A stretch of DNA of 64,000 nt, taken from the NCBI RefSeq assembly GCF_963853765.1, contig NC_088860.1:38502001-38566000 (forward strand), given 5' to 3'. Below the pieces are notes generated by a model. That model did not search any database and was not told where the DNA came from. It saw only the letters and a program-made list of their open reading frames with translations. The translations under genes were made by a program, and so were the position numbers. This document shows positions 1,755-59,966 of the stretch, one piece after another; the stretch's first letter is position 1; every line of letters begins with the position of its first letter. The stretch is from Magallana gigas. Lineage: Eukaryota.

Positions 1755-1907
1755 ATGGACCCCTGGAACAGCGCCCAGGATGTTGTATGCTGCACCCTGT
1801 GTCAGGACTCTGTGGCCCCCATGTACTGTGAAGTTTGTCATATACATCTGTGTAAAGACTGTGTATTGAATCATTTCTCTGATTCCTCTAAAGTTCATGC
1901 CACTTAA
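1755..1907 (+). pseudogene. Out-of-frame N-terminal B-box1 segment of the TRIM-like gene
   Basis: Translates [50 protein letters not shown] (CxxC...CxxC...CxxC...H B-box pattern) in a different frame from the 508-aa ORF. Confidence 0.85.
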
Positions 1908-2983
1908 ACAATATTTAACCACTTTGAACAATCCTAAATGTAGGAAACACACCACCAAACAATGTGAACTCCATTGTGAACAATGTGACATTCCTATTTG
2001 TGTAGAATGTATCTCTTCTGGAAAACATTCAGGACATAAACAAGTTGACATTTTCCAAAGCTTTGAAAACAAAACAGAAATTTTACAAAAAGATTTGCAA
2101 GAATTAGAAAAATCCATTTATCCTAAATACAAAGAGATTGCATCCAACATCCCAGTGCAGAAAGCTGATCTGAGTAAAAACTCCCAGAAATTGACAACAG
2201 CAATTGACAAACAAGGAGAAGTATGGCACAGAGAAATAAACACCATTATCACAAACCTGAAATCTAACGTGGAGGAAATGGAATCCAAACACCTGGTTGT
2301 CCTGAATAAACAGGAAGATGAAATCACACACATCATTTCTGAAATCACACAGACCATTGCTGAACTGAAGAAGTTACTGAACACCAAAGATGTCTGCCTT
2401 GTCTCTGAGTACAAATCCAGGAACGCTGAATTCAGAAGATTGCCTCCTAAACTCAAAGTGTCCTTACCAAAGTTTAGGCCTCAGGAAATCCACACAGATC
2501 AGCTGATTGAACAGTTTGGTGCTCTGTCAGCATTATCTTTTACAACAGAGGAACAAGACTACAGCATGCCGTCCTGGGGAGCCGAGTCCTCTCCCTCAGA
2601 CCGGTCACTGATGGATGTACCCCAGGTCATCACAGCTATAGACACAGGGTATGAATATCTATATGGTGTGACGTGTCTGAATGATACAGAAGTATGGACG
2701 TGTGGTGATGGCAACAGGATGAAACTCTACAACCTGCAGGGGGAACTAGTAGAGTCCATCCAAACCAAGTCAGGGAACGATCCACGGGGCATAGCAGTGA
2801 CAAGGAGTGGGGATCTAGTTTATACTGATCACCATGATAAAACTGTGAACATAGTGAAGAATACACAGATACAGACAGTGATCAGACTACAGGGGTGGAA
2901 ACCTTACGGTGTCTGTAGTACCTCCTCTGGTGACCTCCTGGTTGTCATGGTCAGTAATGATAGAAAACAAACAAAAGTTGTGT

Positions 2984-3019
<36 letters not shown>

Positions 3020-3423
3020 ACGATGACAAAGGACAACCTCTCTATTCACCTGGTGGATTATCTAACATTAAATACATCAGTGAGAACAGGACCCTAGATA
3101 TATGTGTATCAGACTGTGACGCCTGTGCAGTAGTGGTGGTCAATCAGGCCGGGAAACTCCGGTTTACCTATACTGGTCCTCCCTCTACTACCAAGGGATC
3201 ATTCTATCCACTCGGCATCACAACAGACAGCCAGGGTCGGATCCTGACAGCAGACCAATACAACCACTGTATCCACATCCTGGATCAGGACGGAAAGTTC
3301 CTCCGCTACATTGACAACTGTGATTTACAGGATCCAGAGGGTTTATGTGTGGACACCAGAGACAACCTCTTTGTGGCTGAGTATGACACAGGTAAAGTGA
3401 AGAAAATACAATATTACATGTAA
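1897..3423 (+). CDS. RING-less TRIM-like protein: B-box2, coiled coil, NHL beta-propeller (TRIM2/3/71-like bivalve family)
   Basis: 508-aa ORF with B-box CRKH...[16 protein letters not shown]...H..H, a helical coiled-coil region, and NHL-type repeats ([48 protein letters not shown]). Confidence 0.88.
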
Positions 3424-8968: not shown

Positions 8969-9186
8969 NNNNNNNNNNNNNNNNNNNNNNNNNNNNNNNN
9001 NNNNNNNNNNNNNNNNNNNNNNNNNNNNNNNNNNNNNNNNNNNNNNNNNNNNNNNNNNNNNNNNNNNNNNNNNNNNNNNNNNNNNNNNNNNNNNNNNNNN
9101 NNNNNNNNNNNNNNNNNNNNNNNNNNNNNNNNNNNNNNNNNNNNNNNNNNNNNNNNNNNNNNNNNNNNNNNNNNNNNNNNNNNNNN
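8969..9186. other. Assembly gap (218 N)
   Basis: Run of N. Confidence 1.
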
Positions 9187-9989: not shown

Positions 9990-10966
9990 ATGTTTCCGTA
10001 TCGGTACAACTGTGGAATGCACAATACATCATTTATTGAGAAGGTTGAAGATCCAGAAAATTCAGAAAATAGAGTCCATTATATCCCTCATCACCCTGTG
10101 AAAAAGGACAGCACTACAACCCCGATTAGAATTGTGTACGATTGTAGCTGCAAGGACAAAACTGGACATGTTAGTCTAAACGACTGCATTGAGCCATACT
10201 CCCCTATGATGAATGACATCACGTCAATATTGACCAGATTCAGACTGAACAAGTTTGCAGTAACAGCAGATATTGAAAAGGCCTTCCTTCAAATTGAGCT
10301 TCACCAGAAAGACCGTGATGCAACACGATTCCTTTGGCTTAGCGATCCAGGTAATGCATCGAGTCCATTGACAACTTACCGCTTTCGATCTGTCCTGTTT
10401 GGAGCAACTTGTTCACCCTTTATCCTCAGCGCTACTCTGATGAAACATTTTCAAGAGAATGCAAATGAAACTTCATCTCTTCTTGAACAAAATCTCTATG
10501 TTGACAATGTTTTAGCCAGCTTCCAGAGCGAGGAAACAGCTATGAAATTCTACAAAGAATCAAGAACCTTACTTGCAGCAGGAGGTTTTAATCTTCGTTC
10601 CTGGAGCTCCAACAGTGAGATGCTACAAAACTTATCTAAAGCAGTAAAAACAGCGGATGAAGACTCTGTCGTTAAAGTTCTTGGAATGAAATGGAATCCA
10701 CAAGAAGATACTCTTCAATATGCAAAGAATGATACTGGACAAAAGAAGTATCCTGTGACTACAAAGCGAGAAGTATTGAGAGAAACATCAAAGGTGTTTG
10801 ATCCACTTGGATTATTAAGTCCTATTTCTGTGAAGGCAAAGATTTTCATGCAAGAGTTATGGAAAGCTAATTTGAAATGGGACGAAAAACTGCCTAAGTC
10901 TATGCAGACTACATGGAGAGAAATCTCATCAGAAATTTGTGATGCACTGGACATCAAAATAAACAG
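9990..10966 (+). mobile_element. BEL/Pao LTR-retrotransposon pol fragment, 5' part (RT)
   Basis: YIPHHPV, RIVYDCS, ADIEKAFLQI, FGATCSPFIL, YVDN, FDPLGLLSP are Pao-type RT motifs. 5' truncated and interrupted by the LINE at 10967. Confidence 0.92.
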
Positions 10967-11240
10967 TTTTTTTGGTCACGTGACACGGATTATAGTGGAC
11001 GCTCATTCCCTTGCTCCTGTGTTTTTGACACTTTTTGCCGTTTTTCGGAACTCCGGGACATTCTTTAACATGGGTATGTGTAAAGTTTGTTCCCAGTGAT
11101 TGTATATATGTTAACATTCTAGTTATTTTGATGACTTTGACTTGTAAATACTGTATATTCATATCAATTCTGCGGTGATTACGCGGTGAGCGATTTTCAC
11201 CTATTCATACCTGTGTAAATACCTGCGTTCGACACTCGTC

Positions 11241-12587
11241 ATGGCTGACCAACCTGTTGACAAAACAATTAAACCGTTATACCTGAAGGACTCTGATCTA
11301 CAGTGTATTGACGCTAATCGGGTAACGGAATTCATGCTAATGGAGCGTGTAATTGATGTCATAGGCAATTCCTTGCACTGCTTGCAATTAGACAGAAATC
11401 TGTGGCGTGTGTATGTAAAAGACCAAGGCAGCAGAGAAAAACTGCTGACCGAGGGTATAGCTTTGAAAAACATATCTTTAACTTTTTTTGATACAAATCC
11501 CTACAGTTCAGGAAATCATGACCCCACTGTAAATACTCTGAAAGTTCGTCTATGCGGACTACCTTTGTCTGTCGATGAATCGGCCGTCGTCGAGCTACTT
11601 GATAAGTTAGGAGCAAAGTTGAAAAGCAAGATATTGTATGAAAAAATAAGACACCCGGTAACAAACAAAATGACTAGCGTACTTAATGGAAATAGATTCA
11701 TGTACTTAGAACCCCTTGAAAACGGCAAAGTTCTGCCTCGTGTTAACTATTACGCTGGCATACGCTGCATGTTATTTTACTACGGTCAGCCCAAACCTCA
11801 GCGGAATCTCACCTGTACTCAGTGCTGGGACACCGGACACACAAGAAATTTTTGCAAAACCGAACCCCGTTGTAAAGTCTGCAAAACACCCGGCCACAAA
11901 CCAGGTGACTCAAGGTGCTCCTCCTATCAAATTCAGGAAAGTGTTATAGCCTTCAATGGTGAAAATAACATTTTGTCAAATTTTTACCCATGTGAGCTCA
12001 ACATCTTCGGAGTACAACACAAGTCCGCAGAGCATGCATTCCAATATGCAAAATCATTACGATGCGGGGACCTGGAGGCTGCCAAGTCCATCCAAGAGGC
12101 TAAAGACGCTCTCTCCGCCAAACGCATCGGAGACAAAGTGCGGATAAATGAGCAGTGGACCGAATCGTGTGAAAGTGTTATGACCGAAATTATAGAAAAT
12201 AAATGTGTCCAAGTTGAGAGGTTCAGGGAAAAGCTCAGGTCTGTTAAGAAAAACACATTGTTTGCCGAGTCAACATTCAACGACAAATGGGGGACAGGGC
12301 TGGATAAAGCTGGTACAGAAAACACAAAAGCTTCAGACTGGCCCGGTCAGAATCTACTAGGCCATATTATTGGAAAAGTGGCACAGAAAATCAGAAAAAG
12401 AAAAAAAAGCGACCAATGGAGTCAGCCTAAACAGAGCTCGAGACAGCAAAAAAAGCACAGTACAACGCAGAAAAATATAGCAGAAATGCTTCGCTCCCTG
12501 CGCGCCAACACTGACGCCGAATCCGCGTCAGGTTGTGATGCATCTTCAGAAACTGACTCCGAACCCGAGGAATCCGGTAAAGGATAG
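11241..12587 (+). CDS. LINE ORF1p: RRM-like region, two CCHC zinc knuckles, C-terminal NADAR (YbiA-like) domain
   Basis: KVRLCGLPLSV RRM-like strand; CTQCWDTGHTRNFC and CKVCKTPGHKPGDSRC knuckles; NADAR motifs LSNFYPC, SAEHAFQYAK, W...ESVM, FAESTFNDKWGTG, WPGQNLLG. Confidence 0.9.
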   Translation: MADQPVDKTIKPLYLKDSDLQCIDANRVTEFMLMERVIDVIGNSLHCLQLDRNLWRVYVKDQGSREKLLTEGIALKNISLTFFDTNPYSSGNHDPTVNTLKVRLCGLPLSVDESAVVELLDKLGAKLKSKILYEKIRHPVTNKMTSVLNGNRFMYLEPLENGKVLPRVNYYAGIRCMLFYYGQPKPQRNLTCTQCWDTGHTRNFCKTEPRCKVCKTPGHKPGDSRCSSYQIQESVIAFNGENNILSNFYPCELNIFGVQHKSAEHAFQYAKSLRCGDLEAAKSIQEAKDALSAKRIGDKVRINEQWTESCESVMTEIIENKCVQVERFREKLRSVKKNTLFAESTFNDKWGTGLDKAGTENTKASDWPGQNLLGHIIGKVAQKIRKRKKSDQWSQPKQSSRQQKKHSTTQKNIAEMLRSLRANTDAESASGCDASSETDSEPEESGKG

Positions 12588-12754
12588 ACCAAATACTGTC
12601 ATACGAGTTATAAATCAATGACCACAATGTTCGTTATTTGGACTCGCCTTAGGAACAGCGGTATGGCAATTATATGTACGATCACTAGCAAATGCACTTG
12701 CTATGTTCTATACTTTATGCACTTGATAGTTATTTTAATATACAATTCTAAGTA

Positions 12755-15700
12755 ATGGAAAAAGTAAGCTTTATATCAGTAAATGTTAGAGGTCTAAATA
12801 CAGACGAAAAAAGGAAAAAAATATATTCATGGCTTTATGAGAAAAAAATAGATATCGCACTTCTGCAAGAAACACATTTTGTTCAAAAATATGAATGTAA
12901 ATACAACACTGGTTGGAAAGGGAAAACTTTTCATGCATATAGTGATTCAGTTTTTAGTAGAGGTGTAACTATTCTTTTTAGAGAAAATCTTGATATTAAA
13001 GTTATGAACTTTAAAAAGTCATTAGATGGAAGGAAAATGTTGTTAAACGTTGATATAAATGGTGAAATTTTCTCCATCATTAATGTTTACGCTCCTAATA
13101 TATTAAACAACAGACACATTTTCTTTACAAAATTAAAATCTTTTATAGAAAAAAATTGCTTAAATGACAACATAATTCTTTGTGGAGACTTTAATTGTCA
13201 AATTAATGATACAAGTGATAAAAGTTTACACGTTTTGAAAAATATCATGAACAAATTCAACTTAATTGACTTTTGGAAAAGTGAATTCCCCGAGTTGAAT
13301 GGTCTAACATGGTGTGATGCAGAAAACAACCCTAAAAGTAGGATAGATTATGTACTATTAAATGAAAATATATATCGTAAATTTGGTGGATTAATAATCA
13401 GGAAAATTCCTGGCACTCATTCTAAAGGAAATCGCATGTCTGACCATAGGTTTTTAAAATTTCACCTGAACTTATCATGTGAAAAAAGAGGCCCAGGCTA
13501 CTGGAAGTTAAATGTGTCAAATATAGAAAACGATAAATATAAAAAGGAGATTCATAAAATCATTGATAATTTAGATAACTCCTTGAACCCAGTCGACAAA
13601 TGGGAATGTATTAAACGTAAGATAAAAGAATTTTCTATTAATTTTTCGAAATATCAACAGAGATCAATTAAGAAACGGAAAAAGGAAATTGAGAAAGACA
13701 TTGAAAATATAGAAACTAGTAAAACTGAGGAATTCGATTATAAAAAGCTTAAACAGTTAGAAGCAGAATTAGATTCTATTTATGATAAACAATCAAAAGG
13801 TGCACATATTAGATCTAAAGCAAAATGGGTAGAAAATGGCGAAAAAAACACATCATATTTTCTAAATTTAGAAAAGCAACATCAATCATCAAACGTAATA
13901 ACGGAACTTTTGACTTCAAACAATGAAAAAATTCATAATACCAATTCAATTATGGGGGAAATGTTTAAATTTTACCAGAGCTTATACGCAAGTAAAAACA
14001 TTGATAATAAAATAATTGATGATTACTTATCTGAAATCAATGTACCAGTAATAAGTGAGGATAATAAACGTATGCTAGATAAATTTCCGACGTTCGAGGA
14101 ATGTACGGAAGCTGTCAATAGTATGAAACACGATAAATCGCCTGGACTTGATGGATTACCAAGTGAATTCTATCAATGTTTTTGGAATGTAATTGGCCCT
14201 TATTTCTACGATGCTCTTAAAGATATATATGAAAATAAAATGATGACATACACACAGCGGCAATCAGTAATATCGTTAGTGTTTAAGAAAGGAGAAAAGA
14301 ATTCTTTAAAAAATTATCGTCCAATTAGTCTAACAAATACTGATTACAAAATCATAGCTTTTGTTTTTGCAAAAAGACTACAGAAGATCCTAAAAGACAT
14401 AATCAATGATAACCAAACTGCATATATAAAAGGAAGATACATTGGAGAAAATGCCCGGCTTATATTAGATATATTTGAATTTTGCGAATCAGAAAACGTG
14501 GGGGGAATTCTGTTATTTTTAGATTTTGAAAAAGCATTTGATTCGGTTGAATGGAATTTTCTTTTTAAAACATTAAAAAAGTTTAATATCGGAAAAAGTT
14601 TTATTACATGGGCAAACATTTTGTATACAAATCCTATTTTTAAAATGAAAAACAACGGCTGGCTTTCAAAATCATGTTCAATGACAAGAGGAATAAGACA
14701 AGGATGTCCTTTATCAGCTCTCTTATTTCTTTTTGTTGCAGAAATATTGGCGACTAAAATTAAAAATCATCAAAACATAAATGGCATTAAAATAAATAAC
14801 TATGAAATTAAAAGTATACAACATGCAGATGATTTAACAGTGGCTTTGAACGACGAAATCTCAATGAAGAATACTTTAGATATTATTAAAGCATTCTGTG
14901 AATGTGCTGGGTCAAAAATTAATACTAATAAAACTGAATGCATATTATTAGGAGATATGAAAAACGAATTTGAAGAGCTTCATGGAATCAAAGTAACAAA
15001 TAAAGCAATTAAATGTTTAGGTATTTATGTAGGCCATGATAAGGAAGAATGCTATAATAAAAATTGGATGAGAATTTATCATGACATGGAAAAACTATTT
15101 GAATCCTGGAAACGAAGAAAATTAACACTCTTTGGAAAAGCATGTATTATTCGGACTCTAGCTATTTCAAAACTTGTATATACTTCGTCAATACTTTGTC
15201 TTCCTGACAGCAATTTTATTAAAAGAATACAGAGATTGATTTTTAACTTCATTTGGGAAAAAACGGAAAGAATTAAACGAAATACTTTAATTGGAGACAT
15301 AGCAAAAGGTGGATTATCTATAGTAGACATAGATTGCAAGTTAAAATCATTAAAAGCAGCGTGGATTCCAAGATTACTTAACTCAAAAGGCATTCTATTT
15401 GATATTCTTAGTAACCAGTGTAAAAAACTTAATATCGATATACACTTTCTTTTAAAGTGCTCCACTACTAAAACAGAGACCTTGGATAGCATAAAATTAC
15501 CCCTATTCTACAAAGAAATATTTTGTTGTTTTAATGAATGTAAACGTGAACTGCACTTTGAAAAAAGATCACCTGATGATATTTTACAACAACCAATATG
15601 GAATAATTGTAACTTAGTATATAAGGGAAACTCTGTTTTCTTCGAAAACTGGATTAAATCAGGAATACTATACATTAAAGACTTGTTTGACGACGAGGGT

Positions 15701-16483
15701 AACTTCAGACGATTAGAACATTATGCAAATATTATTAATAAATCTAACTGGTTATGTGAATACAAAATTCTTTTTCAAATAACTAAATCAATTCGAAGAC
15801 TTTACTCATTCAGCAATGTAAACTTTATCAACATACAAAGCGTAATGAGTTTCAACTTCCCTCTGGGATATTACAACTTGACTGGTAAATCTAGTAATTT
15901 TTTCTATAAAAATCTCATTGAAAAAAAGTTTTGTAAGCCATCTTCTCAATTAATACTGCGTAAAGAATTTGAAATATACGATGAGAAGAGTTGGAAAAAT
16001 ATTTATGAATGCAAGATTAAAGATATAAAAGATAAACATGTAGCTGAATTCAGTTACAAGCTCTTAAATAATATATTATGTAATAATGTATATGTGAGTA
16101 AATGGAAAAAAGATATATCAAATCAATGTGTACACTGTAAACAAATAGAAAATATAAAACATTTGCTTTTTGAATGTAACAATGTTAAAAACATATGGAA
16201 TACTGTTAGTAGTTTATTGTCATTCAAAATACAATGGAAACATATCGTTGGTTTCTTCTATGAAAAAAGCGATAAAACTAAATCTCTAAATTTACTTATC
16301 ACTTATGTAGCTTATAGAATTTATAAACAAAAAATGCTTTGTAGATTGGATTCTATGAATGAAACTGAATGTATCATATATAATCATGTTAAAAAATCCA
16401 CTTGTTTTTATGCCTCAGTTTTACGTTTTTTAAATGCAAATGCTGAGTGCAAGTTTTTTGAAAATCTGTCAAAGATGATGTGA
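12755..16483 (+). CDS. LINE ORF2p: APE endonuclease, reverse transcriptase, C-terminal Cys/His zinc-binding motif
   Basis: EN motifs SVNVRGLN, LQETH, NVYAPN, GDFN, RIDY, SDH; RT motifs SPGLDGLPSEFY, YRPISLTNTDYK, LDFEKAFD, RQGCPLS, HADD; CVHC...HLLFEC. Uninterrupted 1242 aa. Confidence 0.96.
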   Translation: MEKVSFISVNVRGLNTDEKRKKIYSWLYEKKIDIALLQETHFVQKYECKYNTGWKGKTFHAYSDSVFSRGVTILFRENLDIKVMNFKKSLDGRKMLLNVDINGEIFSIINVYAPNILNNRHIFFTKLKSFIEKNCLNDNIILCGDFNCQINDTSDKSLHVLKNIMNKFNLIDFWKSEFPELNGLTWCDAENNPKSRIDYVLLNENIYRKFGGLIIRKIPGTHSKGNRMSDHRFLKFHLNLSCEKRGPGYWKLNVSNIENDKYKKEIHKIIDNLDNSLNPVDKWECIKRKIKEFSINFSKYQQRSIKKRKKEIEKDIENIETSKTEEFDYKKLKQLEAELDSIYDKQSKGAHIRSKAKWVENGEKNTSYFLNLEKQHQSSNVITELLTSNNEKIHNTNSIMGEMFKFYQSLYASKNIDNKIIDDYLSEINVPVISEDNKRMLDKFPTFEECTEAVNSMKHDKSPGLDGLPSEFYQCFWNVIGPYFYDALKDIYENKMMTYTQRQSVISLVFKKGEKNSLKNYRPISLTNTDYKIIAFVFAKRLQKILKDIINDNQTAYIKGRYIGENARLILDIFEFCESENVGGILLFLDFEKAFDSVEWNFLFKTLKKFNIGKSFITWANILYTNPIFKMKNNGWLSKSCSMTRGIRQGCPLSALLFLFVAEILATKIKNHQNINGIKINNYEIKSIQHADDLTVALNDEISMKNTLDIIKAFCECAGSKINTNKTECILLGDMKNEFEELHGIKVTNKAIKCLGIYVGHDKEECYNKNWMRIYHDMEKLFESWKRRKLTLFGKACIIRTLAISKLVYTSSILCLPDSNFIKRIQRLIFNFIWEKTERIKRNTLIGDIAKGGLSIVDIDCKLKSLKAAWIPRLLNSKGILFDILSNQCKKLNIDIHFLLKCSTTKTETLDSIKLPLFYKEIFCCFNECKRELHFEKRSPDDILQQPIWNNCNLVYKGNSVFFENWIKSGILYIKDLFDDEGNFRRLEHYANIINKSNWLCEYKILFQITKSIRRLYSFSNVNFINIQSVMSFNFPLGYYNLTGKSSNFFYKNLIEKKFCKPSSQLILRKEFEIYDEKSWKNIYECKIKDIKDKHVAEFSYKLLNNILCNNVYVSKWKKDISNQCVHCKQIENIKHLLFECNNVKNIWNTVSSLLSFKIQWKHIVGFFYEKSDKTKSLNLLITYVAYRIYKQKMLCRLDSMNETECIIYNHVKKSTCFYASVLRFLNANAECKFFENLSKMM

Positions 16484-17107
16484 TATGTCTTATTATCATA
16501 GTGTAAAATATTCTATTATCCTAAAACTACTGAGAAGAGACCTGTCTTCCAGTAGAGCTGTCATAAAAGGGAGGATATGGACTGTAAAACAAGGTAGAAC
16601 CTCCTTATTAGGACAGCAAACTCTTTTTGTCCATGATTTTTATATCATAATTATATAAACAACTACAGTGTAATATAGTAAACTGTTATATACCATGGAT
16701 ACATAGAGTCTGCCTATATATCTCTACACCCAGAGACTATGTGATTGATAATATTGTCTACCAGGTTAGGCAAGATACTACTTGTACATTTATTTAAATC
16801 TCTATACATTGCTAATTTAGCCTTATTTGTACACCATTTTTTTTACTTGCTTTATGAATCTATGCTAATTGTATATATATGTGTAATACACTGAAACATT
16901 ATCTGTGGAATCTATACAACTCTAAATACTCTTTAAAGTATTTTTTTCATAAGCAATATTTAATTAGATGACAAAAATAATAATCATAGTATCTTATTTA
17001 AGACAATGTGCTGTCTTGTAGATAGCTTATTAGAATTCTGTGCTTGAAGTTATTGTATACTTTGTTTGTTCTTGCAAATAAATTATCCAAAAAAAAAAAA
17101 AAAAAAA

Positions 17108-17950
17108 AAAATAAACAGAAATAACAGTTCGTCAATAGATTCAAGGTGTGATTCATTGCACGTTTTCTCCGATGCAAGTCAGCAAGCATATGGTGCATGT
17201 GTCTATTTGTTATCAAAGAACAAGATAACATTACTTATGGCCAAAAATCGAGTGACACCAATCAAGCAGATCACACTTCCAAGACTAGAACTCATGGGAG
17301 CACTTATTGGAGCAAGATTGGGAAAACATGTAAAAGAAATAACAAGAGTTAACAAAATTTACATTTGGTGTGACAGTCAAATTGTACTTCACTGGATCAT
17401 TTCACAGAAAACGCCAAACAGATTTGTAGCAAACCGAGTAAATGAAATTAGGGAGATCAGCAAATCTTCAACATGGCAGTATTGTCCAACATACTGTAAT
17501 CCTGCTGACTATCTCACACGAGGAATTGCCCTCAAGAAATTCAAAGAAGATACCCTCTGGTGGAATGGACCAGAATGGTTAATGGAACCCCAAAAATGGC
17601 CTGTATGGGATGGGCCAACAAAGGCAATATTATGTTCCACAAGCACAGAAGAAGAGAGTGATATGAGTCATCAAACGAAGGTTCAAGATACTGTAGACAT
17701 CAAGACTGAAAGTATACAGTCAATACTGAAACTTGAAGATAAGAGTTCACTCATGAAGTTAGTCAGAGTTCTTGCATACATAAGAAGATTCATTCACAAC
17801 TGCAGACATTCTAGTGAAAAGAGAGCAGGATTTCTCAGTAAACAAGAGTTAGGTGAAGTTATTAGACTGCTCATACAAGATGCACAGAGAACCGAGTTTA
17901 CAAAAGAAATGGAATATCTGAAACATCCATCTGGAAGGAAACCAACGGTC
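17108..17950 (+). mobile_element. BEL/Pao pol fragment, 3' part (RNase H region)
   Basis: LHVFSDAS..AYGACVY, TLPRLELMGA, WCDSQIVLHWI, FVANRV, NPADYLTRG, WWNGPEWL; continues the frame of the 9990 fragment across the TSD. Integrase absent. Confidence 0.92.
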
Positions 17951-18065
17951 GCAAAATGTACAAAATCACAATTTAAAAAATATTAAAAGTTCATAATAGG
18001 TCGCGTTGTGTTTGAAAAATTTAATTAGAAAGTCTTTGACTTCTCCTCAACTCTGGCTCTGATTT

Positions 18066-19649
18066 TCATATTTTGGGAAAGTCATTGTGCTCTTGAACCA
18101 ATTTTCCAATTTTGAATTCGTTGAATGTAGTTCCTGCTCTCTTGTGGTAATGCCTGTGGTGAATATTGTTTTCTTCTAATGCTCTATAGAATTTGAATTT
18201 CTCCAAGTTGTTATGGGTATATGGATCCAATTCCCATAGCTGTGTCATCAAGGCTGAGTTTTGTTTCATGATCTCCTCTAAAGAAGTAACATTCTTTCCC
18301 ATCTCCAGATTGATCACTCGAAGTTCTAGCTCATCCAGGTAGTGTCTCAAGTCTGCTGTATCTTTGTTTGCCGATGTGGTGAAGGTCTCACTGCATGTTT
18401 CCACGTTGGATTGAATTTTCAGCATTTGTGCTTGAAGCTGGTTGTTCAAATCTTCTAGGATCTTCATCCTCTGTTCTAAAACTGAATTTTCTCTCTGGAT
18501 TTTCTGGATTTTGTGATTCTTGAACGATGAATTTCTTCTTAGTTTGAAATTCTCTCTCCTTAACTGCAAAATCTCTGATTTAAGTTTTTCCACCAGATCT
18601 TCTTGTGCTTGGTCTTCCTTCTTTTTATCAACGACTGTGTTGGAAGCTGATTTTTTCTGTTTTTCTGTTCTTGACTGAGCAGTTTCTCTCTTCTGTAGTT
18701 TGGTATTCAGTTTGTTTGTCTCCTTGGATGTGGGCACTTTCTCTTCCTCTTTACATCGATCTCCATTCAGCTGTTTTGAGAAATGTAGTTGGATTGACTG
18801 CTCTAGTAGAAGTGATTCTGTCTCTTTTGTCCTCTCTAAATTTTTGACTGAGCTCTTAGATGATGGTTTCAGGAATTGCGACTTGTAACATATGCTGGTG
18901 TGGTGAGTCTTCTTACAAATCCTGCATTTGAAACGTGACTGACAATTATTAACTTTGTGTTTCCCTAAACAGTTGAAGCATACTCTTTTTTCTTTTATGA
19001 TGAATATTCTCACTTCACAATCTTGAATAATATGGCAAGTTGTTGGCGAATGGTTCTCATTGCAGAATAAACATAGCTTTACAAAATTTTGTGGGTTGTT
19101 AATCCTTTTATGACTTGACCCCGCAACCAAGTTAGCTGCTGGAATGAATTCCTGGCTTGATCTTAGATTGCTAGCTTGTCCAGTAGGCTCCACCTTTACG
19201 GCTCTCCTTAGTGACTGTAAATCCCAGATATCATCATCATCTTTTTTGTCCACAGTATAATGAGTCTTAGGGATTCCTGAGTTACCTTGTGACGTGTCAT
19301 TGCATTGAGCAAACTCTTGCGCATTTACATTTAAGTTGATGGATGTAGATTGATGAACATTCTCTAAAGTCTTGGTAGATGACGCGCTCTTTGTCAGTTC
19401 TGCTAATCTTAGTCTTAAATGTGACATGTACTCAACTGAATCTCTGATCTCCATTTGGATTTCTTCTTCACTCGATAATTCTTGTAGGATCTGGCTGTTG
19501 ATTTTCTCTAACGTGTCTTGTTTCTCCTCCAGTATCTTGATCATTGCAGAATGCTCATCCTCATTGTTGGTCTCAGAAATTCTCCCCAAAAAATTAGTTA
19601 TAGTTCCTCGATGTCCTGCACGCATCGCCTTTAGTTTGGATACATGCAT
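18066..19649 (-). CDS. BEL/Pao Gag-derived protein (527 aa): triple zinc knuckle plus coiled-coil tail
   Basis: N-terminus SKLKAMRAGHRGTIT; knuckles CLFCNENHSPTTC, CFNCLGKHKVNNC, CRICKKTHHTSIC; tRNA primer-binding site just upstream. Confidence 0.8.
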   Translation of the reverse strand: MHVSKLKAMRAGHRGTITNFLGRISETNNEDEHSAMIKILEEKQDTLEKINSQILQELSSEEEIQMEIRDSVEYMSHLRLRLAELTKSASSTKTLENVHQSTSINLNVNAQEFAQCNDTSQGNSGIPKTHYTVDKKDDDDIWDLQSLRRAVKVEPTGQASNLRSSQEFIPAANLVAGSSHKRINNPQNFVKLCLFCNENHSPTTCHIIQDCEVRIFIIKEKRVCFNCLGKHKVNNCQSRFKCRICKKTHHTSICYKSQFLKPSSKSSVKNLERTKETESLLLEQSIQLHFSKQLNGDRCKEEEKVPTSKETNKLNTKLQKRETAQSRTEKQKKSASNTVVDKKKEDQAQEDLVEKLKSEILQLRRENFKLRRNSSFKNHKIQKIQRENSVLEQRMKILEDLNNQLQAQMLKIQSNVETCSETFTTSANKDTADLRHYLDELELRVINLEMGKNVTSLEEIMKQNSALMTQLWELDPYTHNNLEKFKFYRALEENNIHHRHYHKRAGTTFNEFKIGKLVQEHNDFPKI

Positions 19650-55955: not shown

Positions 55956-58900
55956 ATCTGTTGCTCAGTCATTTCTTGGACACTGCCATCAGAATCCCCG
56001 CCCGGGTTCCTCCACCGTCACCATCATCCACTCACCCACAAAAGTAAGTCATCAGGATATATCTTAACCATATTAGTTCAGTAATACATTGAGATCTAAG
56101 TGACACGTTCAGTTCAGTATTACATGTACAATACATTGAGATCTAAGTGATGCGTTCAGTTCAGTATTACATTTACAATGCATTGAGATCTAAGTGACGC
56201 GTTCAGTTCAGTATTACATGTACAGTGCATTTAGGGCTAAGTGACGTTCAGTTCAGTATTACATGTACAATGCATTGAGGGCTAAGTGATGTTCAGTTCA
56301 GTATTACATGTACAATGCATTGAGGGCTAAGTGACGTTCAGTTCAGTATTACATGTACAATGCATTAAGAGCTAAGTGAAGCGATGTTCAGTTCAGTATT
56401 ACATGTACAATACATTAAGGGCTAAGTGACGTTCAGTTCAGTATTACATGTACAATGCATTGAGGGCTAAGTGATGTTCAGTTCAGTATTACATGTACCG
56501 TACAATGCATTGAGGGCTAAGTGACGTTCAGTTCAGTATTACATGTACAGTGCATTAAGAGCTAAGTGAAGCGATGTTCAGTTCAGTATTACATGTACAA
56601 TACATTAAGGGCTAAGTGACGTTCAGTTCAGTATTACATGTACGGTACAATGCATTGAGGGCTAAGTGACGTTCAGTTCAGTATTACATGTACAATGCAT
56701 TAAGAGCTAAGTGAAGCGATGTTCAGTTCAGTATTACATGTACAATACATTAAGGGCTAAGTGACGTTCAGTTCAGTATTACATGTATAATGCATTGAGG
56801 GCTAAGTGATGTTCAGTTCAGTATTACATGTACAATGCATTAAGAGCTAAGTGAAGCGATGTTCAGTTTTACTGTACAATGCATTGAGGGCTAAGTGATG
56901 TTCAGTTCAGTATTACATGTACAATGCATTGAGGGCTAAGTGACGTTCAGTTCAGTATTACATGTACAATGCATTGAGGGCTAAGTGATGTTCAGTTTAG
57001 TATTACATGTACAATACAATGAGGGCTAAGTGACGTTCAGTTCAGTATTACATGTACAATGCATTGAGGGCTAATTAAGTGACGTTCAGTTCAGTATTAC
57101 ACGTACAATGCATTCAGGGCTAAGTGACATCATCTTAATCATTTTAACTATCATCATGCACAACTCCAGAATATCATCTTTCTTCTTTTTTTTTTTAATT
57201 CAAGTATTCATATAACATAAATCATAATAAATTGCATATACATTGTATTAACTTGATGAATATGAGAAAAAGGGAATGAGAGAGAGGGAAAAAGAGAGAG
57301 AGAGAGAGAGAGACAGAGAGAATATTATCCTTAATGAGGGTGGGGTGGGGAGGGGGGATCCAAGGGAGAATTGTGATTTCTGAGGAGGGGATTTTACCAT
57401 GAGGTTGAATTTTCCAAGGGATAAAAGTGATCGCTAGGGAGGGGATTTTACCATGTGATTAAATTATCCAAGGGAAAGAGGGGAGGCCTTGTGGGCCCCC
57501 ATCTAAATTGAACGAATATAAATATGAATATAACAATAAATGCATCATGGTAGAATACATGTCACAACAGGAACTCTTGCTGAAAGCAAATTTAGATACA
57601 CAAATAATTATGCGACAAATCATTTTATTTTGTAAACTAATATCTCAGCTAAAAACGATCTGAATTTTTATAAAGAAGAGCCATCAAGGTATTATTTCCC
57701 TCTTCTATTATTTTTTCCATGTATTGTTTTTAATTTTTACTGGGATATTGATTTTTTATATGGGAAATGAGGGGGGGGGGGTATAGCTTTTCCTCTTAAA
57801 ATTATGATCCTTGTTATTAATTTTTGGTAATTTTTTGTATAAGTTTCCTATACTTTCTTCCCCTGCTAATTGTTGGGGTTAATTCAGTGATGTGAATTTA
57901 AATAAATGTCACCTCCCAACATAGATTAGGGTCCAGCACTGCATGGCTCCCTCATTGCTACATGCCTTTACAATTGTGAGTTAACAGAAACAAAGTACTA
58001 AGATTATTTTCTAGAGAAGTTATCTTTCTTATCAGAGGGACATTCAACCTTAACTCTTACAAAAATAAACATATTTAGTTTTCCAGCATTTCTTGGAACA
58101 GCTTTAAAAAGTTAGTAACAAATTGATTTGTGTAGGAATACAAGGCAACCAAATGCCAAACCTATAGTGGCATTGTATTGAGTACCGGTAAATTCATTCA
58201 GACAACTTCTATACGCAAAAAGTCATTCTTGCCAGTTTCACGCAATGCACAATTAGCTTAGATCTTCTTTTTTTTTCTATTTTTAGATTATAAATTTGTA
58301 TGAAAAAATATACAAAAAATATACAAATAAGGGTGTCCAAGTAGCACATTTATCATTGCACTCACTTATCAAAGGTGCGACACGAGTTTGATCCCCATGA
58401 TCGACAGTGGTTGAAAGCAAAAGGGTATGGCGGTTGCCCGCTTGGACACTTGGGTTTTCTATGGGTACTCCAGCTCTTCCCACATTAATGACCCCCTCGC
58501 GCTAACATCCATGCCAACGAAAGATATTAATACATGTAATACCCGGTATATGTTGTAGAAGTTGTTTATCAATTGTTGTAAAATAAATAAGTTCAGTTTC
58601 AGTTTATGAAAAAATATATAATATTTAAATATCTATAGCAGTTGTGCTATTCATAGAAGCACTTGCAATTTGCATGCCAATAGCCAGGATTTTGCTTTCA
58701 GTAAAGCCTGGCTAAAATAACTGATAAAACAACTGCTAGGCATTGTGAGATGTTCTGTCCATTATATTTTAACCATATTAATACAGTATATACTGGTATT
58801 CATAATCACCAATTCTTAGAGCCTCCTTTATTGTTTTAAAAAAGTTGCAATTTTTTTCTATAACAATAACATGTCCAAACGCACTGCCATTATATATACA

Positions 58901-59966
58901 AATTTTGAGTCTTGTTCTCTTGTCCATTTTCAGCTTGGTCATGGGTCCTCAGAGAATGAAGGATGCTGCGTCTGTGTGCTCCAATGAAAACTTCTCCTCC
59001 GTACCAAACATAGCATCCATGGCAACCAGTGTCCTAACCAATCATCAAGGCTACTCAGATTCGGGTCTGGCTCCGCTTCAGTTGGAGGAAGATCTTCCAA
59101 TTCCAGACTTCAACCACCTGCCTTCCAGTCTGGAGGAAGATGACAACAACCATCACACCACCAATCCCCTGAGGTCAGCCATCTTCCAGACGATTCTCAA
59201 CAGCTATCCACAGCTCAGCAGGAAGATGCAGAGAAGCCATTACGTAGCTAAGAAGTTCCAGGAGGCCCCCAGCAACCGGTCAGACTGCCTGTACCAAGCC
59301 TCCAGGACCTCAAAGCTCTCGGATGACATCACTGTTGACAACCTGGTTTCTGATTTCATGGATGAGGAGTTTGACAGTGGATACCACAGCTTCAGTGACA
59401 ATGCCTCCATCAATTCCAGTGGCTCCATTTCTCCTAACTCTAGTGCCATGGACCAACTACAACAAAAGTTTCTTGAGGATTCCAGCATGAAAAACGAGTG
59501 TTCTAACTTCGATGATCTGTGTGTGTACGAGTCCATCATGGATAGTTGTTCAAAACCCTGTGACGTTTTAGAGGCCAGGAAGGTGTCGTCTGCTGTCATT
59601 GTGTCATCTGCCGTCAAGTTTAAGCACTCCAAACACCAGTGTCCTGTGTGCGGGAAGACCTACAGAGGAAACACCAACTTGAACTATCACATGGCTACCC
59701 ACACCGGTATCCGGCCTCACAAATGTTCCATCTGCGGCAAGGCCTTTACCCAGAAGTCCACTTTGCGCACACACTTCCGGATTCACACAGGCGAGAAACC
59801 GTACAAGTGCCGAACCTGCACTCGTGCATTTGCGGACTACTCCACCTGCATGAAGCATGAGCGGACCCACAGTGGGGAGAAGCCATACGCATGCCCAGAG
59901 TGTGGAAAGTGTTTCGCCCAATCCGGAAATATGCTCCGACATCGGCAGACTCACAGGAAAAACTGA
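55952..59966 (+). CDS. C2H2 zinc-finger transcription factor (4 C-terminal fingers), 2 coding exons, ~374 aa
   Basis: Exon 55952-56043 (donor AA|GTAAGT) splices in frame to 58934-59966. Four CxxC...HxxxH fingers with TGIRP/TGEKP/SGEKP linkers. A possible non-coding exon ends at a GTAAGT donor near 54819. Confidence 0.85.
56070..57130. repeat. 45-bp minisatellite, ~23 units, with a longer variant unit
   Basis: Unit gtgacgttcagttcagtattacatgtacaatgcattgagggctaa; variant taagagctaagtgaagcgat recurs every 3-4 units. Confidence 0.95.
58350..58600 (+). mobile_element. V-domain-like SINE remnant
   Basis: GAGTTTGATCCC B-box-like and GGGTTTTCTATGGGTACTCCAGCTCTTCCCAC resemble the V-SINE central motif; A-rich tail. 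Confidence 0.5.

Follow-up and report, generated by a model that had tools for sequence, protein, structure and literature searches.

The window analysed here is a 64,000 nt stretch of the genome of the Pacific oyster, Crassostrea (Magallana) gigas (contig NC_088860.1, positions 38,502,001 to 38,566,000 of the forward strand). It contains a long interspersed nuclear element (LINE) of ~6.1 kb that lies within the pol gene of a BEL/Pao element. The first open reading frame (ORF1) of this LINE encodes a protein, ORF1p, in which two RRM-like domains and two CCHC zinc knuckles are followed by a NADAR domain and a short tail, and the second (ORF2) encodes APE and reverse transcriptase (RT) domains. 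Coordinates of these features are collected in Table 1. An earlier note on this DNA, prepared from the letters alone, had recognized an in-frame NADAR domain in ORF1 of an intact LINE with a target-site duplication (TSD) and a poly(A) tail. This description of the element proves correct: ORF2 is a stop-free frame of 1242 aa, the tail comprises 23 A residues, and the sequence AAAATAAACAG is duplicated at the two ends.

The fusion of NADAR to a LINE ORF1 has been encountered before. A study of transposable elements (TEs) of Ectocarpus, published in Genome Biology in 2025, reported that ORF1 of several Tx1 LINE families listed in Repbase for C. gigas contains a NADAR domain of the YbiA family (PMC12477816), and this was the sole prior report recovered by our literature searches for NADAR in LINE ORF1. 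Repbase held 14 L1-Tx1 entries for C. gigas (PMC10294476). The published families share with the window element the host, the LINE group and the ORF1-NADAR fusion, and the window copy almost certainly belongs to one of them, given its 98-99% identity to C. gigas proteins. The fusion was thus already known and is probably catalogued in Repbase, a possibility that the earlier note had allowed for. In that study the domain is noted in passing, through a Repbase match and a supplementary alignment, without analysis of selection, active site, structure or distribution of the oyster elements (PMC12477816). What is new here is the size and depth of the family, the co-divergence of ORF1 and ORF2, the evidence for selection, a map of the active site with its deviations, a structural model and a second LINE context.

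A full-length LINE in a BEL/Pao pol gene

The boundaries of the LINE are given by its TSD, which consists of 7 unambiguous bases and up to 4 A, and by its poly(A) tail. The interrupted pol gene (RT plus Peptidase_A17) occupies positions 9990-10966 and 17108-17986 of the plus strand, and the insertion splits the Peptidase_A17 profile of Pfam into positions 1-66 on the left and 61-162 on the right. Since the Pao reading frame resumes past the TSD, the insertion has a clean 'empty site'. A second copy of the LINE, located on an independent contig (L005) and 98.5% identical at the nucleotide level, aligns from exactly 10967, and this fixes the 5′ end of the element at that position. No further copy was found within the 64-kb window.

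Neither ORF1 nor ORF2 has internal stops, and the GDFN, SDH and ADD motifs are present in ORF2. The ORF2 protein matches human L1 ORF2p over aa 4-870 with E=4e-82, far better than it matches R2 proteins (~1e-12), and for this reason we place the element in the L1 group. The combination of an APE and RT ORF2, a type I ORF1 (RRM plus CCHC), poly(A) and a TSD is that of L1-group (Tx1-like) elements, the 'Tx1' label being taken from published work (PMC12477816; PMC10294476) and not from an RT tree of the window element. The LINE is apparently a young, autonomous L1/Tx1-type element of the Pacific oyster.

Identity and fold of the C-terminal module of ORF1p

The earlier note had placed the NADAR domain at 11943-12395, corresponding to ORF1 aa 235-385. 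The Pfam profile PF08719 matches aa 241-385 along profile positions 9-163 of 163, with 85.4 bits against a gathering score of 35.1 (E=6.7e-24), and thereby bears out both the position of the domain and the profile comparison that the note had recommended. All of the motifs listed in the note are present: LSNF at 245-248, SAEHAFQYAK at 262-271, W306...VM314, K321..Q324, AE343STFND348KW350GTG and G369QNLLG374. Matches were also obtained to the NCBIfam equivalog-domain model TIGR02464 for YbiA-type proteins (83.9 bits; cut-off 73.7), to the phage NADAR family phrog_1017 (E=4e-32) and to the candidate-defence NADAR model of PADLOC (1.6e-20). Among solved structures, the best match by sequence is the NADAR of Phytophthora nicotianae (PnNADAR; 8BAU), found with phmmer at E=1.5e-6. 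The phmmer match to E. coli YbiA is weak (E=0.13), yet the motifs align.

An AlphaFold2 model of the NADAR domain alone reached a predicted local distance difference test score (pLDDT) of 93.9 and a pTM of 0.87, and it has the NADAR fold, with an α-helical core flanked by two small β sheets. In a Foldseek search of the PDB this model retrieved two significant matches only, 8BAU (TMq 0.83, rmsd 2.7 Å) and E. coli YbiA 2B3W (TMq 0.75). The structural comparison with YbiA and with DarT1-associated NADARs that the earlier note had called for therefore succeeded for YbiA, whereas the DarT1-associated structures, those of the DarG1 protein of G. lovleyi, were not retrieved.

The hallmark of the YbiA subfamily, a Glu in the last β strand, is shared by E. 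coli YbiA (2B3W) and the window domain, in which E343 ends the strand 340-343. Together with the conservation described below, these data make it nearly certain that the C-terminal globular module of ORF1p is a NADAR domain of the YbiA subfamily and an ancient, selected part of the LINE lineage.

The match above cut-off to TIGR02464, which bears the name 'riboflavin biosynthesis intermediates N-glycosidase', and the presence of the subfamily Glu would also agree with a housekeeping YbiA-type N-glycosidase that acts on riboflavin-pathway intermediates or other damaged ribosylamines. To our knowledge, animals do not synthesize riboflavin, so the classical YbiA substrate is unlikely for a LINE NADAR. 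Moreover, E. coli YbiA is a bare single-domain metabolic N-glycosidase, unlike the LINE ORF1 fusion, and it is hard to see why a metabolic enzyme should be retained for so long inside the RNA-binding ORF1 of two LINE types (see below). We regard a housekeeping function as very improbable.

The N-terminal modules and the tail of ORF1p

A model of the whole ORF1p, built by AlphaFold2 with 43 homologues, has a mean pLDDT of 84.9 and values of 93-98 over the NADAR region. The N-terminal half is predicted to form two RRM-like folds. When the full-length model was used as the Foldseek query, the matches that followed the NADAR structures were tandem RRM proteins aligned over this half, including hnRNP A2/B1 and U2AF65. 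Neither RRM nor zf-CCHC was matched when the first 230 aa were scanned with Pfam, and the RRM assignment is one of predicted fold. The two knuckles have the forms C192-x2-C195-x4-H200-x4-C205 and C211-x2-C214-x4-H219-x6-C226, and each of their Cys and His residues is either invariant or retained in at least 90% of the 43 ORF1 homologues. The RRM-like region and paired CCHC knuckles that the earlier note had described ahead of the NADAR domain are thus supported by the predicted fold and by the conserved Cys and His residues.

Beyond the NADAR domain, the basic-then-acidic disordered tail described in the same note (aa 394-448) was indeed modelled mostly with low confidence. It contains a short conserved helix at aa 413-422 of the model, and Q410 is nearly invariant (aa 410-422 correspond to 12468-12506). 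This helix may be an interaction motif.

A conserved family of ORF1-NADAR LINEs

A search with ORF1 yielded 76 homologues, nearly all of which carry PF08719. The named relatives come from C. gigas (98-99% identity), Saccostrea cucullata and Pinctada imbricata, with C. virginica added by a search with the domain only. This word-indexed search with the excised NADAR domain returned ORF1 fragments only, and an exhaustive HMMER search with the same domain returned 6680 matches at E<=1e-3. Among the best 150 representatives at 50% identity from these matches, at least 45 have the three-module ORF1 (RRM-like, CCHC and NADAR). A profile search added no further named taxa, and the only named relative from outside the bivalves is a multi-NADAR host protein of Haliotis.

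The earlier note had supposed that the domain travels with the element, and its consistent link to one ORF1/ORF2 lineage shows that it does. At all six related loci with enough downstream DNA, an APE-RT ORF2 comes directly behind ORF1-NADAR; L001, L002, the P0023 locus, L006 and L007 are among them, and in these five the ORF2 is intact. The identities of ORF1 and ORF2 to those of the window element fall in parallel, from 67%/61% for L002 to 31-33%/35-39% for L001, L006 and L007, and all of these ORFs are intact. In a FastTree analysis of 186 complete NADAR segments, the ORF1-type domains are united in one clade of 158 (support 0.93), with host-like multi-NADAR proteins outside; since this tree has a midpoint root and its sample is biased towards similar sequences, it shows the coherence of the group and not its origin.

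Selection was assessed from the proportions of non-synonymous (pN) and synonymous (pS) differences. Between families (80-67% protein identity), the NADAR region has a pN of 0.10-0.20 and a pS of 0.80-0.95, or a pN/pS of ~0.12-0.22, where saturation of synonymous sites (pS >=0.75) makes the ratios upper bounds and not formal dN/dS values. When the four regions of ORF1 are ranked by pN, NADAR comes lowest or next to lowest in each of these comparisons, and the greatest variability is usually seen in the tail. A pair of copies that are 99% identical differs in the NADAR region by one non-synonymous and two synonymous changes, too few to be informative. These results indicate that the NADAR domain is under long-term purifying selection in ORF1.

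The alternative that a host exon, or an assembly chimera, was captured neutrally in the window copy only must be given practically no weight. The 76 homologues nearly all carry PF08719, 97 complete domains share the same ORF1 layout, pN/pS is well below 1, and the linkage of ORF1 to ORF2 recurs on independent contigs; because of this layout, these low ratios and this repeated linkage, the domain is no peculiarity of a single copy, and we rejected a single-copy capture or chimera. Where the earlier note had reckoned with the lack of a profile or fold match, with a single copy or with neutral evolution, we thus find a profile match, a similar fold, many copies and a pN/pS that speaks against neutrality.

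NADAR in a second type of LINE and in other proteins

A marine metagenome contig (L010:341-6055) carries a LINE of another type. Its ORF1 encodes a PHD-like motif, a coiled coil, a GDSL esterase and a C-terminal NADAR domain. Its APE-RT ORF2 resembles L1 ORF2p in the RT core only (E ~1e-9) and is 24% identical to the window ORF2 over the RT core. Five further representatives (P0160, P0169, P0201, P0238 and P0255) combine a GDSL esterase with NADAR in either order, and three of the five fall inside the ORF1-type NADAR clade of the FastTree analysis. This distribution suggests that NADAR moved between LINE ORF1 types. Since L010 pairs NADAR with a GDSL esterase ORF1, the domain is retained by LINEs in different protein contexts. 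ORF1 proteins with a GDSL esterase (and PHD) are otherwise known from CR1/L2-type LINEs; they follow the same modular principle as the window ORF1, which is of the RRM/CCHC type and has no esterase.

Other proteins also contain relatives of this domain. Two proteins of 618 aa each (P0165 and P0254) have an N-terminal NADAR and a C-terminal TatD-family DNase, and they are among the nearest non-ORF1 relatives of the LINE NADAR. These DNase fusions point to a nucleic-acid-related role for the LINE NADAR clade. Giant proteins with 3-7 tandem NADARs were seen as well (P0132, P0133, P0149 and P0237); P0132, the product of Haliotis rufescens LOC124129589, has 4240 aa and 7 repeats with a spacing of 642 aa. 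Such multi-NADAR proteins may be host genes or may be tandem arrays merged by gene prediction.

Two gene models from C. gigas and metaclust (P0071 and P0072) are of mixed composition. One, annotated as an IFIH1-like CARD protein, holds an ORF1 fragment of 67% identity to the window element, and the other joins NADAR to a tyrosine-phosphatase; both are probably TE-gene chimeras or annotation artefacts. A protein of Marseillevirus likewise combines NADAR with a PTP domain.

Active-site residues

To map the active site, residues described for PnNADAR (PMC11543638) were transferred to ORF1 through the phmmer alignment. This protein is an orphan YbiA-subfamily hydrolase of guanine-linked ADP-ribose; it is 25% identical to the window domain and stands alone, whereas the window domain is fused to RNA-binding modules. 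The equivalences are E43 with E264, K50 with K271, K75 with K294, G78 with G297, W89 with W306, E125 with E343 and W133 with W350, of which the pair E125/E343 is taken from the YbiA alignment and the model strand 340-343, the ungapped PnNADAR alignment being offset there by one residue. The count of conservation covers 97 complete NADAR domains, all of them in proteins with the N-terminal module of ORF1. E264 and W350 are each kept in 96 of the 97, E343 in 88, K271 in 86 and K294 in 82.

The residue at the E343 position is informative in another respect. In DarG1 and in the phage protein AdfN, which belong to other NADAR subfamilies, Asp or His replaces the YbiA Glu. We considered and rejected a DarG1-type antitoxin, because position 343 is Glu and not Asp, DarT1 is not a neighbour, and there is no N-terminal β-β-α extension that would form a DNA groove. 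The neighbours of the window NADAR are the LINE ORF2 and the BEL/Pao pol gene, and the domain begins with the strand 235-238, directly after the CCHC knuckles, with the basic N-terminal extension of DarG1 not present. The knuckles may stand in functionally for that extension.

A possible role in removing ADP-ribose from nucleic acid bases

The NADAR domains studied so far offer a candidate activity. NADARs hydrolyse guanine-linked ADP-ribose on DNA, and an orphan eukaryotic member of the YbiA subfamily is among those that do so (PMC11543638). Members of the family that include YbiA-type and animal (sponge) proteins take ADP-ribose off G and C in DNA and RNA, and NADAR is the only hydrolase family that reverses guanine ADP-ribosylation on RNA (PMC11543638; PMC11833690; PMC12945103). 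Removal of ADP-ribose from cytidine has been described for the YbiA-type and sponge proteins (PMC12945103). Furthermore, a proven case of counter-defence borne by a mobile genetic entity is that of the phage AdfN proteins, which clear phage DNA of ADP-ribose (PMC11825919).

We propose, as the likeliest of the mechanisms considered and with a probability of about 40%, that the NADAR domain of ORF1p removes ADP-ribose from bases of the LINE's own nucleic acid, as a means of repair or counter-defence. The paired RRM-like domains and CCHC knuckles would allow ORF1p to bind first the LINE RNA and, at a later stage, single-stranded cDNA or target DNA. Once ORF1p is bound, the active site of NADAR would lie against the nucleic acid, and the domain would hydrolyse ADP-ribose that is N-glycosidically attached to bases (to guanine N2 and possibly to cytosine). 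Left in place, these adducts, set by an ADP-ribosyltransferase (ART) of the host or of another source, would be a block to translation, to reverse transcription or to synthesis of the second strand. DarG1 and AdfN act in the mode envisaged here, taking ADP-ribose off guanine in the nucleic acid of a replicating element. As in other counter-defence systems, the putative effector is encoded by the element itself, being carried by the LINE and conserved in its family.

RNA viruses provide a second parallel. NADAR and Macro domains are largely mutually exclusive in animal RNA viruses, bivalve picornaviruses included, and have been proposed to undo host ADP-ribosylation; NADAR itself is found in RNA viruses of bivalves, annelids and crustaceans, where a role against host ADP-ribosylation has been suggested (PMC9503650). 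In roniviruses, nido-like and hepe-like viruses and the picornaviruses of bivalves and annelids, these domains form part of the proteins by which an RNA-based selfish element is replicated or packaged, and the host range overlaps that of the LINE in the bivalves. One Ectocarpus Gypsy lineage has NADAR at the N-terminus of Pol. In the viral and Gypsy cases the domain is thus part of a polymerase polyprotein, whereas in the LINE it belongs to a nucleic-acid chaperone, ORF1p. Structural matches of the window NADAR to ronivirus and nido-like replicases have identities of only 14-20%, and because of these low values there is no sign of direct transfer between virus and LINE. The counter-defence idea of the earlier note accordingly has good precedents, in phage AdfN (PMC11825919) and in viral NADAR and Macro domains (PMC9503650), and may extend to the LINE.

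Several points weigh against a base-directed hydrolase. We infer all three of its premises, namely the catalytic activity, the nucleic-acid substrate and a host restriction that acts by ADP-ribosylation. In the window copy, R79 and R93, which hold the pyrophosphate in PnNADAR, are replaced by D298 and C310, with Lys the family majority at both positions; Y84, which stacks on the adenine, falls in a two-residue deletion; and between E343 and W350 the loop lacks one residue that YbiA and PnNADAR have. The full set of ADP-ribose contacts of PnNADAR (R79, Y84, R93 and D130) thus has as its counterpart D298, a deletion, C310 and N347/D348. These changes may mean that ADP-ribose binding is altered, or that the substrate is different, in the window copy. 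In addition, a model named for a riboflavin-intermediate N-glycosidase matches the domain, so sequence alone cannot separate the substrates, and de-ADP-ribosylation in vitro does not predict protection in vivo (PMC11125620).

The shorter loop had been noticed earlier as one residue fewer between D and W. The phmmer alignment with YbiA, which pairs E343 and D348 with the Glu and Asp of that protein, agrees with this placement, but the family as a whole argues for another: Asp is found at position 347 in 53 of the 97 ORF1-type domains, giving the canonical D-x-x-W spacing, and the N347 D348 arrangement is that of the window subfamily. The deletion is for this reason better placed between the Glu and the Asp. 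Judged from the alignments, the catalytic core is intact, and the contacts to the phosphates and adenine of ADP-ribose are kept only in part.

The same losses, of two basic residues that contact phosphate and of one aromatic contact, would suit a domain that does not catalyse at all. NADAR could then be a 'reader' of ADP-ribose or nucleotides, or a structural or oligomerization part of ORF1p, and could for example guide the ribonucleoprotein to ADP-ribosylated chromatin or DNA breaks. The catalytic positions of host multi-NADAR proteins, which are looser (the E264 equivalent is present in 16 of 25), would fit such a function too. In contrast, the catalytic E264, K271 and E343 are most conserved in the ORF1 family, at the frequencies given above, and we give a non-catalytic domain little credence.

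A further alternative concerns the substrate. NADAR might act not on bases but on soluble or RNA-terminal ADP-ribose derivatives, such as Appr>p-type compounds that arise in RNA repair, moieties from NAD caps or immune signals resembling cyclic ADP-ribose. It would then assist in the maturation or protection of the LINE RNA, or dampen signalling by NAD derivatives. This corresponds to the older prediction for viral NADARs (PMC9503650), and for the NADARs of oyster Tx1 and Ectocarpus Gypsy elements 'processing the RNA intermediates' is the only function proposed (PMC12477816); the changed pyrophosphate-binding residues of the window copy could likewise suit another ligand. On the other hand, all macromolecule NADAR activities demonstrated to date are directed at N-glycosidic base adducts, and the fusion to RRM and CCHC modules favours a polymer-bound over a diffusible substrate. 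We consider an action on soluble or terminal derivatives unlikely, and next to it we see slim chances for an action on proteins, in which NADAR would strip N-linked ADP-ribose (on arginine, for example) that antiviral poly(ADP-ribose) polymerases (PARPs) or ARTs had placed on ORF1p, ORF2p or host factors. No NADAR is reported to be active on proteins in the literature that we surveyed on the family, and the active site maps onto a nucleobase-ADP-ribose hydrolase.

As to the origin of the adducts supposed by a base-directed hydrolase, the pierisin-type transferase CARP-1 is known from the clam Meretrix and not from oysters. No oyster transferase that would ADP-ribosylate nucleic acid was identified, in an analysis whose searches did not extend to eukaryotic genomes.

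Coordinates and other features of the window

Table 1. The LINE, its modules and its flanking duplications, in window positions.
Feature	Position	Strand	Basis or remark
Left TSD, AAAATAAACAG	10956-10966	+	Exact 11-base repeat of 17108-17118; inside BEL/Pao pol gene
Full-length L1/Tx1-type LINE, ~6.1 kb	10967-17107	+	Boundaries by TSD and poly(A); 3′ end ambiguous by <=4 A
5′ untranslated region (UTR)	10967-11240	+	Insertion point to ORF1 ATG
ORF1, 448 aa plus stop	11241-12587	+	Open frame; 99% identical to P0001, 98% to C. gigas K1QZF9
Two RRM-like domains, ~aa 13-180	11277-11780	+	AlphaFold2 pLDDT ~90; Foldseek matches to tandem RRMs, E ~3e-5
Two CCHC zinc knuckles, aa 192-226	11814-11918	+	Cys/His conservation, 43 ORF1 homologues
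NADAR domain, aa 235-393	11943-12419	+	Pfam envelope aa 241-385 = 11961-12395; key residues E264, K271, K294, G297, W306, E343, W350
Basic-then-acidic tail, mostly disordered	12420-12584	+	aa 394-448; pLDDT <50 at aa 395-411 and 425-448
ORF1-ORF2 spacer, 167 nt	12588-12754	+	Between the two frames
ORF2, 1242 aa	12755-16483	+	Uninterrupted frame; Pfam domains
ORF2 APE, aa 8-231	12776-13447	+	Pfam
ORF2 RT, aa 515-757	14297-15025	+	Pfam
ORF2 zf-RVT, aa 1078-1148	15986-16198	+	Pfam
3′ UTR	16484-17088	+	
Poly(A) tail, 23 A	17089-17111	+	Last 4 A shared with TSD
Right TSD, AAAATAAACAG	17108-17118	+	Exact repeat of left copy

On the strand opposite to the Pao element, an ORF of 527 aa at 18066-19649 (minus strand) has three CCHC-like knuckles and long coiled-coil-like stretches; it is gag-like and has no Pfam match. 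An uninterrupted ORF of 508 aa at 1897-3423 (plus strand) combines a B-box zinc finger with NHL repeats and is TRIM-NHL-like, a family that is often expanded in bivalves. A third ORF, of 373 aa, lies at 58845-59966 (plus strand) and has several C2H2 zinc fingers. Satellite-like tandem arrays are found at 27846-28612 (a 50-bp unit repeated 15.5 times) and at 56083-57128 (a 45-bp unit repeated 22.5 times), with several smaller arrays elsewhere in the window. A run of 218 N at 8969-9186 is an assembly gap or masked sequence.

Significance

Because the fusion is already published, the value of the observation lies in the question of function and not in discovery of the fusion. What NADARs do physiologically in animals is openly acknowledged to be a gap in knowledge (PMC11125620). 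A selected NADAR domain in the RNA-coating protein of LINEs is a natural experiment that bears on this gap: it speaks for an N-glycosidically linked threat to retrotransposition intermediates, for which base-linked ADP-ribose is the most plausible candidate. An active domain would indicate nucleic-acid ADP-ribosylation as a means of transposon or virus restriction in invertebrates, and the LINE would then give a simple handle for locating the host transferase. Bivalve RNA viruses also carry NADAR.

A wider proposal, which we consider less likely than not, is that LINEs of bivalves and other marine invertebrates from at least two unrelated clades carry active hydrolases of base-linked ADP-ribose, directed against an undescribed host defence that ADP-ribosylates retroelement RNA or cDNA. 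The two clades are those with an RRM-CCHC-NADAR ORF1 (L1/Tx1 type) and with a PHD/esterase-NADAR ORF1 (non-L1 type). If this proposal is true, these LINEs would represent a eukaryotic counterpart, at the level of transposons, of the contest between DarT and phage AdfN.

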